DNA of 64,000 bases from Selaginella moellendorffii (Eukaryota; Plantae; Lycopodiophyta): assembly GCF_000143415.4 (NCBI RefSeq), contig NW_003314266.1, positions 1,696,463 to 1,760,462 of the forward strand, read 5' to 3'. Under the pieces are notes generated by a model. The model did not search any database, was not told the origin of the DNA, and was given only the letters and a program-made list of their open reading frames with translations. Shown here one piece after another: positions 12,840 to 18,150 of this stretch. Every line of letters starts with the position of its first letter. Within the stretch, counting starts at the first letter, position 1. Both the position numbers and the translations under genes were made by a program.

Positions 12840-14250
12840 ATTGTTTACCTATTCGTCTTCTACATTTCTGTCCATTGGTTGTCAAAGAACAATGTCTTTG
12901 GCTTTGTAACAACCATCTCAACAGCACATTACGCTCAATAAACTATAATTTTGATGTTGTTCATTGCCTAAGGAGTTCTATGGCTGATGCTAATGCCCTT
13001 TCTCGAGCTCCTTTTCCTTCTCCACTCTCTTCTCATGTTTTTGACGAGTTTGTTATTCTAGCATCTAAGGATTTTCTAGATGAGGATTCTATGCTGCTAG
13101 TGGTTGCTGTACTTGACGTTCAGTGTCCACAAGGCACAGAGCAAGATCTACCTTCTCTTTAAGAAAATTAAACCGTGGATTTGAAGACTTCGAAATGGGT
13201 TTGAGAATCCTGCATCACTTGCTAATAACTTGCCTTTCCGGCATTTACATTCTCAATATTGCTTTAAATACAACCTTTTTTATTTTGTGAGGACGGATCC
13301 TGATGGTCATTTACAGCTGGTAGTGCCTTCTGTTTTTATTCTGCGGTTTTTCTATACTTATCATGATTCTCCTATTCTATGTGGGCATATAGGACCTTTT
13401 TCACAATTGACTGTTGGCAATGACTTCCTCCTCAATCGAGTGGTGTTTCAGCATTCTTGTCTAGAACAGATTCTTTTGGATAATGGTCCCATATTTATAG
13501 CTGAGGCATTTCACGTTTTGATGTCTCGGTTGGGGATACGCCACATTTTCACAAGTGTTTATCATCCACAATCAGAAAGTCTGGTGGAATGGCTTGTTCT
13601 CACGTTCAAAAGGATGATCACGAAATATGTGAATTTTCAGCATTCTGATTGGGATGGTTATTTGCCATCTCTTTGGTATGCATATGTCACAAAGGTGTAG
13701 AGTTCTGTTAGTGCTTCACCATATAAACTCTTATATGGTTATAATCCAATATTACTAAAGAAGTTGGGTTTACCTGCGATTGCCATAAATTGCTGATACT
13801 AGGTCATGGGATTTGTATTTGACAAGCATTCTTCCACTTGTCCAAGCAGAGTTTACCGAACACTTAGGTCATGTACAAGTAGGACAACAATGACACTACA
13901 ACTTCCATCATCGTTCACTTGTGGAGTATAAAGTGGATGATTTGGTGTTAGTCTGTTTTCCCTATTTTACGGTATATAGTTTGTCTAAGGGGCTCCTTGT
14001 TCAATGAAAAAGACCATATCGAGCGTTGCAGCAAGTTGGACACAAGTTTATGAGGTTCAACATGATGTCAAACAAATCGATCCTCTAGAGATTGTGCATG
14101 TGCAACGGTTGAAACGCTTTATACAAAGGGATCATGAACAATTAATACCACTTACAGATCTGCTAATGCCTCCTCTTGATGTTCTTCCAGATCTCGGCCC
14201 ATTTACAAAAGAACTCTAATAGTCTTTCATTATTTTGAGAGGAGGGAATG
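12840..14250 (+). mobile_element. Decayed Ty3/gypsy pol remnant (end of RNase H plus integrase) with polypurine tract
   Basis: NYNFDVVH..MADANALSR, YHDSPILCGHIG, ILLDNGPIF, TSVYHPQSESLVEW, SPYKLLYG, IVHVQRLKRF. Integrase lies after RNase H. PPT gagaggagggaa at ~14237-14248 followed by TGTGA. Confidence 0.85.
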
Positions 14251-14678: not shown

Positions 14679-17173
14679 ATGGAGGACGAAGCTGATGGGT
14701 ATAAGCGATTCGCAGCACCAGTGTCATTTTTATGTTTTAGTCTAACCAAGCACTTGAAAAATGCAGGAGCTGCAGCGCATCGAAGCTCAAAGCGCTGTTT
14801 GAGACCGAGCAGCAGAAGCTTCAGGTAAAGAATTTTTTTTTTTGCTCTTAAGTTACGAAAAACAGGTTTTTTCTGTTTTTGTTCTTCGTGTCAGGTTGGC
14901 AATCCAAGTTTTCAATATCAGCCTCCAAAGCTGCAGCCCCGTGTGTCGTTTGCACCATCGTTTTCTAGCCAGGTCTGATTCTTTTCTGGTACTTTGAGCT
15001 ACTGATTTGTGCTTGTGTTTCTTTTCCAGGTCCTCTTCTCCACAGAACTTTCCAACGTTGTTTTCATGCTTCCATCAGGTGAGAATCATGTCGATTTTTT
15101 ACAGTTCTTGAATCTCTTCTTGTTCCATGCAGGGACTGATTGCGTCCAAATAGGTCGTCGACAAGAAAATGTTGGCGATGCTACCATTCAAATCATAAAA
15201 ACAGAGACGCACGACCAACAGGTTTTAGAACCACACTCTAAATCCTCTGGCCATCTCTTTTTCATTTTACCTTTGCAGGACTCACGCATTGTCGTATCCA
15301 ACGCTGCCAAGATTGTCGTTGCGGAGGTGTCTTTCACGGGAATTATAAATATAGTGGTTTGTAGACAGCCCCTTTCCTCGTGTTCGTTCCTTTTCCATGA
15401 GATCTTCCATTCGTTTCTTCCACTGCAGCCCGACGCAAATTGCCGGATTGCCATTGAGACCAGCCAACATATTGTGGAAGCGACATTTCGCAGGTCGGCC
15501 TCTTTCTCTATTTCTTCTCAGTAGAAGCTTGCGACAACATGATAATCTGTAACTTAGCTTTTGTACTCCAGCACAGATACATGGATGGAGTTTGCTAAGG
15601 TTTTTGTTTACGCTCGCTATCACGTACAACACTCTGTGGCACAAGTCTTCCAGGTATCGCTTTCACTTTCAATCGAAGTCTGTATGATTGATGGATTTTT
15701 TTTCAGGATGTGGTATGTCCAAAAGACAATTTCAGGGAGATCGAAGATGGCGATGTGGTGAGTATCACTATTTTTTCCTCTTTTATACTTTGCTCCGGCT
15801 GCTTGAATTCTTGTGATCTAGGTGCAAGTGCTTTGTAAAGTGTTCCTTGCAAAACCGTGGAATGAGTGTTCCACTGGGCTAGTTTTTCATGGAGACACTC
15901 CAGGTTTGCTTTGAAAAATCTCGTGTGTAATCTGGGTTTTTTGTGCCAGAGAAAACTATCAGACTTGAAATCGGTTCGAAAAACTTCACAGGTAAGAATT
16001 GATTGTTTCTTCGTCAATTTTCCATGGAAAGTTTCTTTGTCCAGGACTGGAAGATGGAATCCGAGGAATGCTAAAAGGAGGGAGAAGGCTTCTGATGTTC
16101 AAGGATCATGACGACGAGGTTCACTTTGATTGAGCTCATCGAACTTCGATTGGTTTTTCTTATCTCGTTTCATTCAGGACTCGCTGGCGGCTTTATACGA
16201 TATAACGGTAGCTCGTGTCCGCAAGAGGAAAACCTTGAAGCAGCTGAGTGAAATGGAAAGCTCGAAAGAAATGGAAAGAATTCCCGAAGTTCCTGCCAAT
16301 GACATACAACAGAGCTTTGGAGAGGAGGGGAGCGAAGGGAAAGTGGAAACTGTGACTGACCGTCTGGCTCGCATGACTCGCGCTGGAGCAGCAGTAAATC
16401 TCCATCTTTTTTCGGCTCCAGCTCCAAAACAAGGGAACGAAACTCCGAAACTTGATTCCGACAAGTTGGCTCCAAATCGTACTGGGGACACTGGCGATGA
16501 ATCACGAGTTTTTGTTCAGTCCGGTCCAATACTGACTTGCGAGCACCTCGAGCTCTTACGGGAAATCAAGTATTCACAGGTACGTAATTGGAATCAAACT
16601 TGAGCGAGCTTACCATTTTCTTCTTCTTGTATTGTACGTAGGCAAACATGTCCGAGTCATTCGCGTCATTTTCTTCGAGACTCGACCAGCTTGTAAACTC
16701 GAAATCACGAGACTTTGAGCGGCGAGTGATTCCGGAGACGGAGCTCGTGGACGAGGAAAGCAACTCAGAAGAAGACAATCTGGTGGAGTCGATTGCGAGA
16801 ATGATCGCCGAAAACAGAGAGCTCAAAAGACGCTTGGAGTCTTCCAAAGGTAGTCTAGTCTTTCACCTTTCTTCTCTCTTGTTCTTGAACAGTGTCGATG
16901 TAGGACCACGAAAGATCAAACAGCCAAGTCGTGAATCCAACGGAGAACTCCAAGGATTGGAAGACCAAGTTCAGCAGATCCTACACCGGATTTCCCTGTA
17001 AGAAATCTCTTCTACTCCACATCCAAAAACACTTTTTTTCTTGCAGAGACATGGAAATCGAAATGACCAACAGCCGTCTTCAAGCCGATACCAAAGCCAG
17101 CCTTTTGAGCTCCTTGCAGCAAAAACTAGACGCGGCGACAGCATCCATCCTGGAGATCGTAAACCAAAGCTAG
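14679..17173 (+). CDS. FKBP15/WAFL-like protein (N-terminal motif, WH1/PH-like region, degenerate FKBP domain, coiled coil); about 15-16 exons
   Basis: Hand-spliced: MEDEADG/SCSASKLKALFETEQQKLQ/VGNPSFQYQPPKLQP...VEATFR/STDTWMEFAKVFVYARYH...EIEDGDV/VQVLCKVF...GLVFHG..EKTIRLEIGSKNFTG/LEDGIRGMLKGGRRLLMF.../..LYDITVARVRK...DRLARMTRAG...coiled coil. First exons 14679-14698, 14767-14824, 14895-14972. Confidence 0.75.
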
Positions 17174-18150
17174 CAAGAGGAAGTTCTCAAAAACGAAGGC
17201 AATCTAGTTTCTCCTCTCGTCGTGCACGGAAGATGAGGTAAGCATTACATACTTTACTCGAAGGCAATTCTCGCAGAATCGGCAGGACTTAACCCGTACG
17301 AAGAAATCACTCTAAAGAGACACCACTCTCTTAGTCCGGGGTGGAATTTTACCGGGACAAGGTGGTGGAATTCGCACTAAGATCATGTTAAGCACGCATT
17401 GGAAGTAACAAGGGTGTCGACATAAAGGAACCAAAGTGTCGACACCCATGACAACATCCAATTCTCTCGAGTTTGTGACGATCGCTATCAGTGACTACAC
17501 ACTCTCCACACAAATGGAGCCATTCTCTACTTTAAAAAGCTCTCTCCTCGTGGGACGCTTTGGTGGAACTTGGCATCCGGAGCACGAAGAGTTAAAAAAA
17601 ACCATAGTGACGATTAGACGAAGGACATTAGTTATATTCTACTCCCAACATCCCGGAGTGTCGCTATCGTCTTCTCGTTACGAATCCCGGCCGTCCGTGG
17701 CTTGTAACGCCCAGGCGCTGGTGGCAGTCCATCTCCTGGACTTTCCGCCCCGTAATGCTGGAGCTGTCGTACACTGGCCAAGAGGAATGGGCGCTCCTAT
17801 ATAAAGTGGCCTGGCCGTTCAGTCATGGGAATGTGAAGGCCGCATTAGATTGAAAGAGCGGCCTAGGGTTTTATTCGCGCAGTGGCACGGATCGGTCGAT
17901 CGAGGCGCTGGCTGGCGGCGCGACTCTTCTCCAGGTCTGGGATCCTGCTTGTCCGATTCCGGTCTGGAAATTTCATCATATTTTAGATTCTGGCAGCTTT
18001 CTGGTGTTCGCTGTCTGGATCCTTTTTTTTTAGTTCTCTTTGTGTGGTAGCAGTGTCCTACATTCTGGATTTGTGTCCTTTTCTTCCTCACTGGAGTGTG
18101 CTATAAGCCTGATTGGTGTTCTTCTTTCTTTTCCTGACTAGATTCATGGA

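Follow-up and report, generated by a model that had tools for sequence, protein, structure and literature searches.

Does a land plant carry a member of the FKBP15/WAFL family, a group known in mammals as a little-understood partner of retromer and the WASH complex? The question is raised by a gene at positions 14679 to 17173 (+) of a 64,000-nt stretch of Selaginella moellendorffii DNA (RefSeq assembly GCF_000143415.4, contig NW_003314266.1, positions 1,696,463 to 1,760,462), hereafter the window. WAFL (FKBP15, also FKBP133 or KIAA0674) consists of a WH1 domain (residues 69-171), an FKBP domain (178-290), a coiled coil and an acidic end; it co-precipitates strumpellin and SWIP, and its association with endosomes is proposed to run via the coiled coil (PMC2850539). 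A tripartite complex of retromer, WASH and FKBP15 has been proposed, binding of FKBP15 is lost in the Parkinson-linked VPS35 D620N mutant, and the protein is described as not conserved in Caenorhabditis elegans or Drosophila (PMC4024763). Here, we report that the Selaginella gene is spliced and expressed, that by sequence comparison the N-terminal half of its protein is homologous to and collinear with an authentic FKBP15, and that the gene is probably a member of this family encoding a short, non-catalytic endosomal adaptor.

The gene model is an exon chain spliced by hand, with boundaries then corrected from transcript contigs. As the preliminary description of the locus had noted, the open reading frame (ORF) track holds only short pieces across the interval; the two ends it gave for the gene proved to be the ATG and the stop codon of the coding sequence (CDS). 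The chain comprises 16 exons and 15 GT-AG introns of 46-78 nt each and is free of stop codons throughout. Transcripts nowhere contradicted it and called for two small corrections, which placed the start of exon 5 at 15154 and exon 6 at 15279-15356 (first drawn to 15326). The corrected CDS (1578 nt) translates letter for letter to the 525-aa protein XP_024525500.1 (P0001 below), which RefSeq names [quoted passage not shown]. In an index of public sequencing runs, 20 runs from 10 studies held about 0.25-0.42 of the sampled words of the stretch, the amount expected of spliced transcripts, and contigs from four runs (four studies) behaved as transcript assemblies, with intron-skipping joints present. 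An open frame of 1578 nt, joined at 15 consistent splice sites and backed by transcripts, goes far beyond what chance would give, and the gene is both spliced and expressed.

Isoform X1 (P0005; 532 aa) arises from an upstream acceptor for exon 5: the model with acceptor 15133 translates exactly to P0005, with seven additional residues. The joint to the downstream acceptor, 15154, was seen in three of the four runs; the remaining run (X12) had no contig across the joint. A G-to-T change at 15133 in the second haplotype turns the first residue of the extra segment from G into V. Exon 13 (134 aa), searched with phmmer against 1.84 billion representatives, matched only P0001, at 100% identity over the exon; a Pfam scan of single exons, pieces too short for the purpose, found no family.

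A comparator was sought by scanning 241 million metagenome records for EDG..GM.KGG.RLL, written as a degenerate DNA pattern; this motif is common to P0001 and a fragment quoted in the preliminary description. The pattern matched a single contig (L002), which carries an uninterrupted 1455-aa ORF (P0006; L002:2060-6424, minus strand); as this 4.4-kb CDS is uninterrupted, the contig is probably an animal transcript. By its Pfam matches P0006 is an authentic FKBP15: the family signature PF23649 scores 127 bits at residues 593-812 and FKBP_C 99 bits at 180-272, and WH1 (18.4 bits) and VID27_PH give sub-threshold matches at 64-156. The PF23649 match covers the coiled-coil region, not the N terminus. 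In sequence, P0006 differs clearly from the human FKBP15 fragments quoted in the preliminary description, and it was not taken to be the human protein.

BLASTP aligned residues 87-243 of P0001 with 92-245 of P0006 (52.4 bits, E 7e-11, 26% identity), and a second high-scoring segment (E 5e-4) paired 355-481 with 528-637, at the start of the PF23649 domain (its first 45 or so positions). In shuffle tests, the FKBP domain gave z 14.8 (0 of 2000 shuffles; z 5.0 without the search motif), the non-FKBP N terminus (P0001 1-172 against P0006 1-178) z 7.5 (0 of 2000), the N-terminal motif region z 4.3, and the C terminus against the PF23649 region z 3.0 (10 of 2000); the linker was not significant (z 1.5; 183 of 2000). 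Because P0006 had been chosen through the search motif, which lies at residue 227 in P0001 and 229 in P0006, the test was rerun without it: residues 1-226 against 1-228 gave z 12.0 (0 of 2000 shuffles, score 91), in one local alignment running from 2 to 219 in P0001 and from 8 to 220 in P0006. Identity over the N-terminal 270 residues was 26%.

The order of conserved blocks tells the same story. Every block quoted in the preliminary description is present in P0001 (ASKLKALF at 11-18, GNPSFQYQPPK at 28-38, FRSTDTWMEFAKVFVYAR at 137-154, TIRLEIGSKNFTGLEDGIRGMLKGGRRLL at 213-241, LYDITVARVR at 255-264 and RLARMTRAG at 311-319), and P0006 has equivalent blocks in identical order, including the LARM..G motif of the linker. 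A further match, LF..PAPK, between the P0001 linker and the P0006 C terminus was discarded as non-collinear and not significant (E 1.6). A feature search of the ESM Atlas was topped by arthropod and chordate FKBP15 clusters (0.91; 203 and 196 shared features), followed by an oomycete cluster (0.89) and a chlorophyte cluster with a 532-aa representative (0.83); residues 1-172 alone scored 0.75, a value that is not usable. With the BLASTP match, the motif-free comparison, the Atlas clusters and the RefSeq name all pointing the same way, the FKBP15/WAFL-like identity first proposed for this gene is borne out: the observation is confirmed and its interpretation supported. At the level of databases the identification is not new, as automatic RefSeq annotation already says FKBP15. 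A literature search found no paper linking FKBP15 in this sense to Selaginella or to plants, and where plant papers use the name "FKBP15", their titles and abstracts suggest that other FKBPs are meant. In the plant literature the name belongs to unrelated 15-kDa plant FKBPs.

The gene might instead be an ordinary, or divergent, standard land-plant FKBP that resembles FKBP15 through the shared fold only, which we consider extremely unlikely. FKBP_C is the only Pfam family detected in P0001 (residues 177-243), at 18.8 bits for the whole protein against a cut-off of 21.1 and at 23.0 bits, above that cut-off, for residues 170-265 taken alone, and plants own many FKBPs, some of them non-catalytic. 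However, the FKBP15 similarity runs on through 170 residues upstream of the FKBP domain, FKBP_C reaches only 19-23 bits, and searches of PDB sequences with phmmer and profiles (whole P0001, FKBP part, N-terminal part and N-terminal profile) returned noise only, with nothing from phmmer among all PDB FKBPs. An FKBP42/TWD1-like gene in the same window, about 22 kb away, is an ordinary plant FKBP and served as the control: the P0001 FKBP domain against its FKBP exons gave z -0.9 to 2.0, whereas P0006 against one of them gave z 9.4. As P0001 shows no likeness to a control that P0006 does resemble, its likeness to FKBP15 is specific and goes well beyond the FKBP fold. The concern that the protein might fall among ordinary plant FKBPs was not borne out with the one plant FKBP compared, and on this comparison that candidate was rejected.

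FKBP42/TWD1 shares with P0001 an FKBP-fold domain; the window's copy continues into tetratricopeptide repeat (TPR)-like and C-terminal anchor-like sequence, has no EVH1-like domain and shows no similarity to P0001. FKBP42 acts as a non-catalytic scaffold. P0001, with its marginal FKBP_C match and no similarity to the one plant FKBP compared, does not fit the standard land-plant FKBP classes (FKBP12/13/15-x/16-20/42/43/53/62/65/72). An EVH1-like domain at the N terminus is not known from these classes, and we know of none in which a central FKBP domain is combined with such a domain and a coiled coil.

The region ahead of the FKBP domain was modelled with AlphaFold2 (AF2). A single-sequence model (predicted local distance difference test [pLDDT] 35) was discarded. 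The model retained used a five-row alignment (A2: three Selaginella rows, P0006 and P0007) and had a pLDDT of 63-80 for most of residues 50-150, falling to 45 in block 111-120. Its N-terminal domain is predicted to have six strand elements followed by a helix at 140-155. Compared by VIA-align with 48,161 PDB representatives, modelled residues 48-159 matched the Ran-binding domain (RanBD) of RanBP2 (Z 11.5), the EVH1 domains of ENAH (11.4) and Homer3 (11.2), the WH1 domain of SPRED (10.7) and the EVH1 domain of N-WASP (9.2). The predicted domain would therefore resemble both EVH1/WH1 domains (Ena/VASP, Homer, SPRED, N-WASP) and RanBP1/RanBP2 domains in fold (Z 9.2-11.5 over 104-114 residues), with no sequence or Pfam match to either in P0001; since EVH1 and RanBD are tied in fold score, the type of ligand is not readable from the fold. 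Modelled residues 174-270 matched SlyD (Z 9.3) and FKBP13 (Z 9.1), and Foldseek agreed with VIA-align on both the PH-like and the FKBP fold.

The model thus predicts the WH1/PH-like fold on which the preliminary description had made its reading depend (Z 10.7-11.5 at residues 48-159), and it places a WH1/EVH1-like PH domain N-terminal to the FKBP domain, which follows it directly; both arrangements are those of WAFL. P0001 and animal FKBP15, as represented by P0006, have in common an N-terminal motif (L..LF / Y..PK.QP), a predicted EVH1/WH1-like domain, matching coordinates for the FKBP domain, LARM..G in the linker and a weak similarity at the start of the coiled-coil domain.

Within the FKBP domain, the ligand pocket is degenerate. 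The pocket positions, which we take to be Y26, F36, D37, F46, V55, I56, W59, Y82 and F99 in FKBP12 numbering, differ between P0001 and P0006 in A2 at D37 (H in P0001), F46 (I), V55/I56 (N/F), W59 (L) and Y82 (F). P0006 keeps the pocket residues of catalytic FKBPs. The 80s loop of P0001 is about 10 residues shorter than that of P0006, and acidic. P0001 accordingly has neither the conserved pocket nor the full-length 80s loop of a catalytic FKBP, and the D37 equivalent even differs by haplotype, H in one and Y in the other. The lost pocket residues and the shortened loop suggest a scaffold rather than a peptidyl-prolyl isomerase, in line with the earlier remark that the flap loop is deleted here; judged from the alignment, the domain probably binds a protein partner and neither isomerises proline nor binds FK506.

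Two short heptad-like stretches lie at 370-406 and 484-524, with 22 windows where shuffles give 5.3, and the C-terminal 140 or so residues have weak Pfam matches to coiled-coil families; the protein ends in ...EIVNQS. At 525 aa, P0001 is far shorter than P0006 (1455 aa) or human WAFL (1219 aa; PMC2850539). Animal FKBP15 has a central coiled coil of about 450 aa and an acidic end, and P0001 is without both and without a detectable PF23649 region. The C terminus of P0006 has an Asp run followed by LDWFS, with LF-acidic-like motifs before it; this tail, of a kind that P0001 does not have, resembles the acidic motif of WASP-family proteins and the retromer-binding LFa repeats of FAM21.

Between the second haplotype (L001; GL377566.1) and the window there are 22 substitutions in exons, of which 9 are synonymous and 13 non-synonymous; the ratio of non-synonymous to synonymous polymorphism (pN/pS) is 0.42. 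In the assembly of the second haplotype, exon 15 has lost 1 bp at the place that corresponds to 16946 of the window, and some 130 bp downstream of this deletion exon 16 holds a run of N (equivalent of 17078-17093); the deletion and the run of N together account for the truncated database models P0002-P0004 (483-512 aa). That deletion, the truncated models, the 13 non-synonymous changes with their pN/pS, and the failure of word-index searches to find close relatives could all be taken as signs of a decaying gene, still transcribed but on course to end as a pseudogene. We regard this as very unlikely: the frame is intact over 16 exons in the window haplotype, all splice sites are canonical and used, and transcript contigs from three studies that carry the second-haplotype single-nucleotide polymorphisms at 16953 and 16957 show no gap at 16946. 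Given these gap-free transcripts and the nearby run of N, the frameshift probably stems from faulty assembly rather than from a broken allele. The intact frame, the transcripts and the gap-free second-haplotype contigs led us to reject the pseudogene candidate.

We therefore return to the gene as a probable FKBP15/WAFL family member, short and non-catalytic. Its layout would be an N-terminal motif, an EVH1/RanBD-like PH domain, an FKBP domain, a variable linker and a short coiled-coil-like C terminus, and by analogy the protein may dimerise and serve on endosomes as an adaptor linking retromer to the WASH complex. WASH is reported to occur in conifers as well as in Ostreococcus, Physcomitrella and Selaginella, and in grasses it survives as decaying fragments (PMC3298513); that Selaginella, unlike angiosperms, is reported to retain it makes an endosomal scaffold role plausible.

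Several points weigh against this reading. PF23649 had no match in whole P0001 at E <= 1, nor in its parts 1-176, 40-170, 170-265 and 380-525 at E <= 10; the signature is found in only 13% of the members of the arthropod FKBP15 Atlas cluster, so the PF23649 model has limited sensitivity. Two other parts of animal FKBP15 are absent, its long central coiled coil and its acidic C terminus with a W. P0006 is the sole authentic FKBP15 compared and was fished out by P0001's own motif, so that its FKBP score is partly by construction. A2 contained this same comparator, and the mean pLDDT of the AF2 model built on it is moderate (54.8). An ESM Atlas shape search speaks for the family, with the chordate FKBP15 cluster as best match (template modelling [TM] score 0.45, residues 33-256) and the 532-aa chlorophyte cluster second (TM 0.44, residues 45-255), but all TM values are below 0.5. 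Word-index searches with whole P0001 and with residues 8-262 and 137-262 returned only P0001 itself and no other plant relative, within a scope (proteins of 289-919 aa, shared 5-mers) that says little on distant relatives. The pN/pS ratio, from 22 substitutions, is weak evidence of purifying selection. Finally, the retromer and WASH link, plausible as an analogy, draws only on the mammalian FKBP15 papers and on the reported Selaginella WASH (PMC3298513). A related-locus search in metagenomes also returned no relative of the Selaginella gene.

Part of this evidence fits a true FKBP15 homologue whose function has drifted: a shortened scaffold, specific to its lineage, that has given up WASH and retromer for some other, possibly cytoskeletal or unrelated, role. 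The missing PF23649 region overlaps the coiled coil proposed for endosome association of WAFL (PMC2850539), the acidic tail is gone, the pocket has degenerated to the point of varying between haplotypes, and mammalian FKBP15 is itself not essential for WASH-retromer binding (PMC4024763). Such a drift nevertheless seems unlikely to us, as N-terminal motif, EVH1-like domain, FKBP scaffold and LARM..G have survived a very long divergence in unchanged order, many studies show expression of the gene, and Selaginella is reported to keep WASH (PMC3298513).

If the gene is indeed a family member, a lycophyte homologue puts the origin of FKBP15 far below animals. It would also be a natural stripped-down variant, in which conservation extends to the N-terminal motif, EVH1-like domain and FKBP scaffold but not to the catalytic pocket, long coiled coil or acidic tail. 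A broader proposal, which is possible and which we put forward only tentatively, is that FKBP15 is an ancient eukaryotic accessory of retromer and WASH, not an animal invention, which early-diverging green plants kept together with WASH and angiosperms lost together with it. Were that so, the 525-aa Selaginella form (and perhaps the chlorophyte form of about 530 aa) would be the minimal core of N-terminal motif, EVH1-like domain, pseudo-FKBP domain and short coiled coil, and the ancestral function would need neither prolyl-isomerase activity, nor a long coiled coil, nor an acidic tail. The chlorophyte "hypothetical protein" cluster of the ESM Atlas (representative 532 aa, 51 members) is like P0001 in length and in a shape match that covers both domains, a comparison made by Atlas scores alone and below the levels that the tool calls reliable; it may be the green-lineage form of the FKBP15-like family. 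Commander is lost in Arabidopsis and partly retained in a moss (PMC10187114), and the Selaginella gene would add to a picture in which endosomal recycling modules, WASH and Commander among them, survive in early-diverging land plants and are lost in Arabidopsis. With the name already in RefSeq, the value of the finding is limited to a modest evolutionary point, and the role in the plant is suggested by analogy.

Coordinates of the FKBP15-like gene, its predicted domains and neighbouring features in the window are collected below.

Table 1. Features of the FKBP15-like gene and its surroundings (window positions; residues are those of P0001).
Feature	Position	Strand	Remarks
Exon 1 with ATG	14679..14698	+	Residues 1-7, first part; joint 14698/14767 in three runs; matches P0001
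Exons 2-3	14767-14824, 14895-14972	+	N-terminal motif L..LF ... N.S..Y..PK.QP, common to authentic FKBP15; transcript joints
Exons 4-8	15030-15078, 15154-15221, 15279-15356, 15429-15493, 15572-15653	+	With the end of exon 3, encode the predicted PH-fold domain
Alternative 5' extension of exon 5	15133..15153	+	21 nt in frame; adds GTDCVQI, giving isoform X1
Predicted EVH1/WH1-RanBD-like PH-fold domain	14958..15632	+	Residues 48-159; AF2 model, VIA-align matches, N-terminus z 7.5
Exons 9-12	15707-15757, 15822-15903, 15950-15991, 16045-16118	+	With the start of exon 13, encode the degenerate FKBP domain
Degenerate FKBP domain	15728..16228	+	Residues 174-266; Pfam FKBP_C, structural matches, shuffle tests against FKBP15
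Linker (remainder of exon 13)	16229..16579	+	Residues 267-383; poorly conserved; LARM..G motif at 312-319
Exons 14-16	16642-16849, 16904-16997, 17047-17173	+	Residues 384-525; C-terminal helical, coiled-coil-like region; transcript joints
Stop codon	17171-17173	+	End of exon 16
3' untranslated region (UTR)	17174..17500	+	Intron at about 17238-17285 (joint 17235/17284, cut +2); transcripts reach at least 17500
Probable decayed retrotransposon	13230-14219	+	ORF fragments with sub-threshold integrase matches
Prolyl oligopeptidase gene	18151 onwards	+	Downstream neighbour
Germin/cupin-like ORF	38247-38885	+	212 aa; by eye
FKBP42/TWD1-like gene	~38995-40390	-	Control in the shuffle tests
ORF with PPR-repeat look	40522-42312	-	596 aa, intronless; by eye

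In the 3' UTR, one run used an alternative intron acceptor near 17275. Relative to the window, a 13-nt insertion after 17360 is seen in contigs from each of the four runs, and a 1-nt deletion at 17338 in contigs from three; the inserted 13-mer occurs in the second haplotype, so these insertion and deletion changes are allelic differences. One contig of 4265 nt (run X5) extends from the FKBP15-like gene past 17500 towards the prolyl oligopeptidase gene, a sign of overlapping transcription or of a chimeric assembly. In the window, ORFs of the prolyl oligopeptidase gene read ...DPYRW, and the second-haplotype counterpart of this gene bears Peptidase_S9_N and Peptidase_S9 annotations.

Just upstream of the FKBP15-like gene, the ORF fragments have sub-threshold matches to the rve integrase core (18.2 bits) and to an integrase C-terminal domain (16.6 bits), and are probably, from these matches, a decayed retrotransposon. 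The exon ORFs of the FKBP42/TWD1-like gene encode the FKBP domain (e.g., GLAIAVASMKAGESALFKVGWKLGYGKEGNFSFPNVPPMADLVYEVEL), the TPR-like sequence and a hydrophobic, anchor-like C-terminal end. On either side of it in the window lie the intronless ORF that looks by eye like a pentatricopeptide repeat (PPR) protein and the ORF with germin/cupin-like sequence (HTHPRGSEIIYVVKG).

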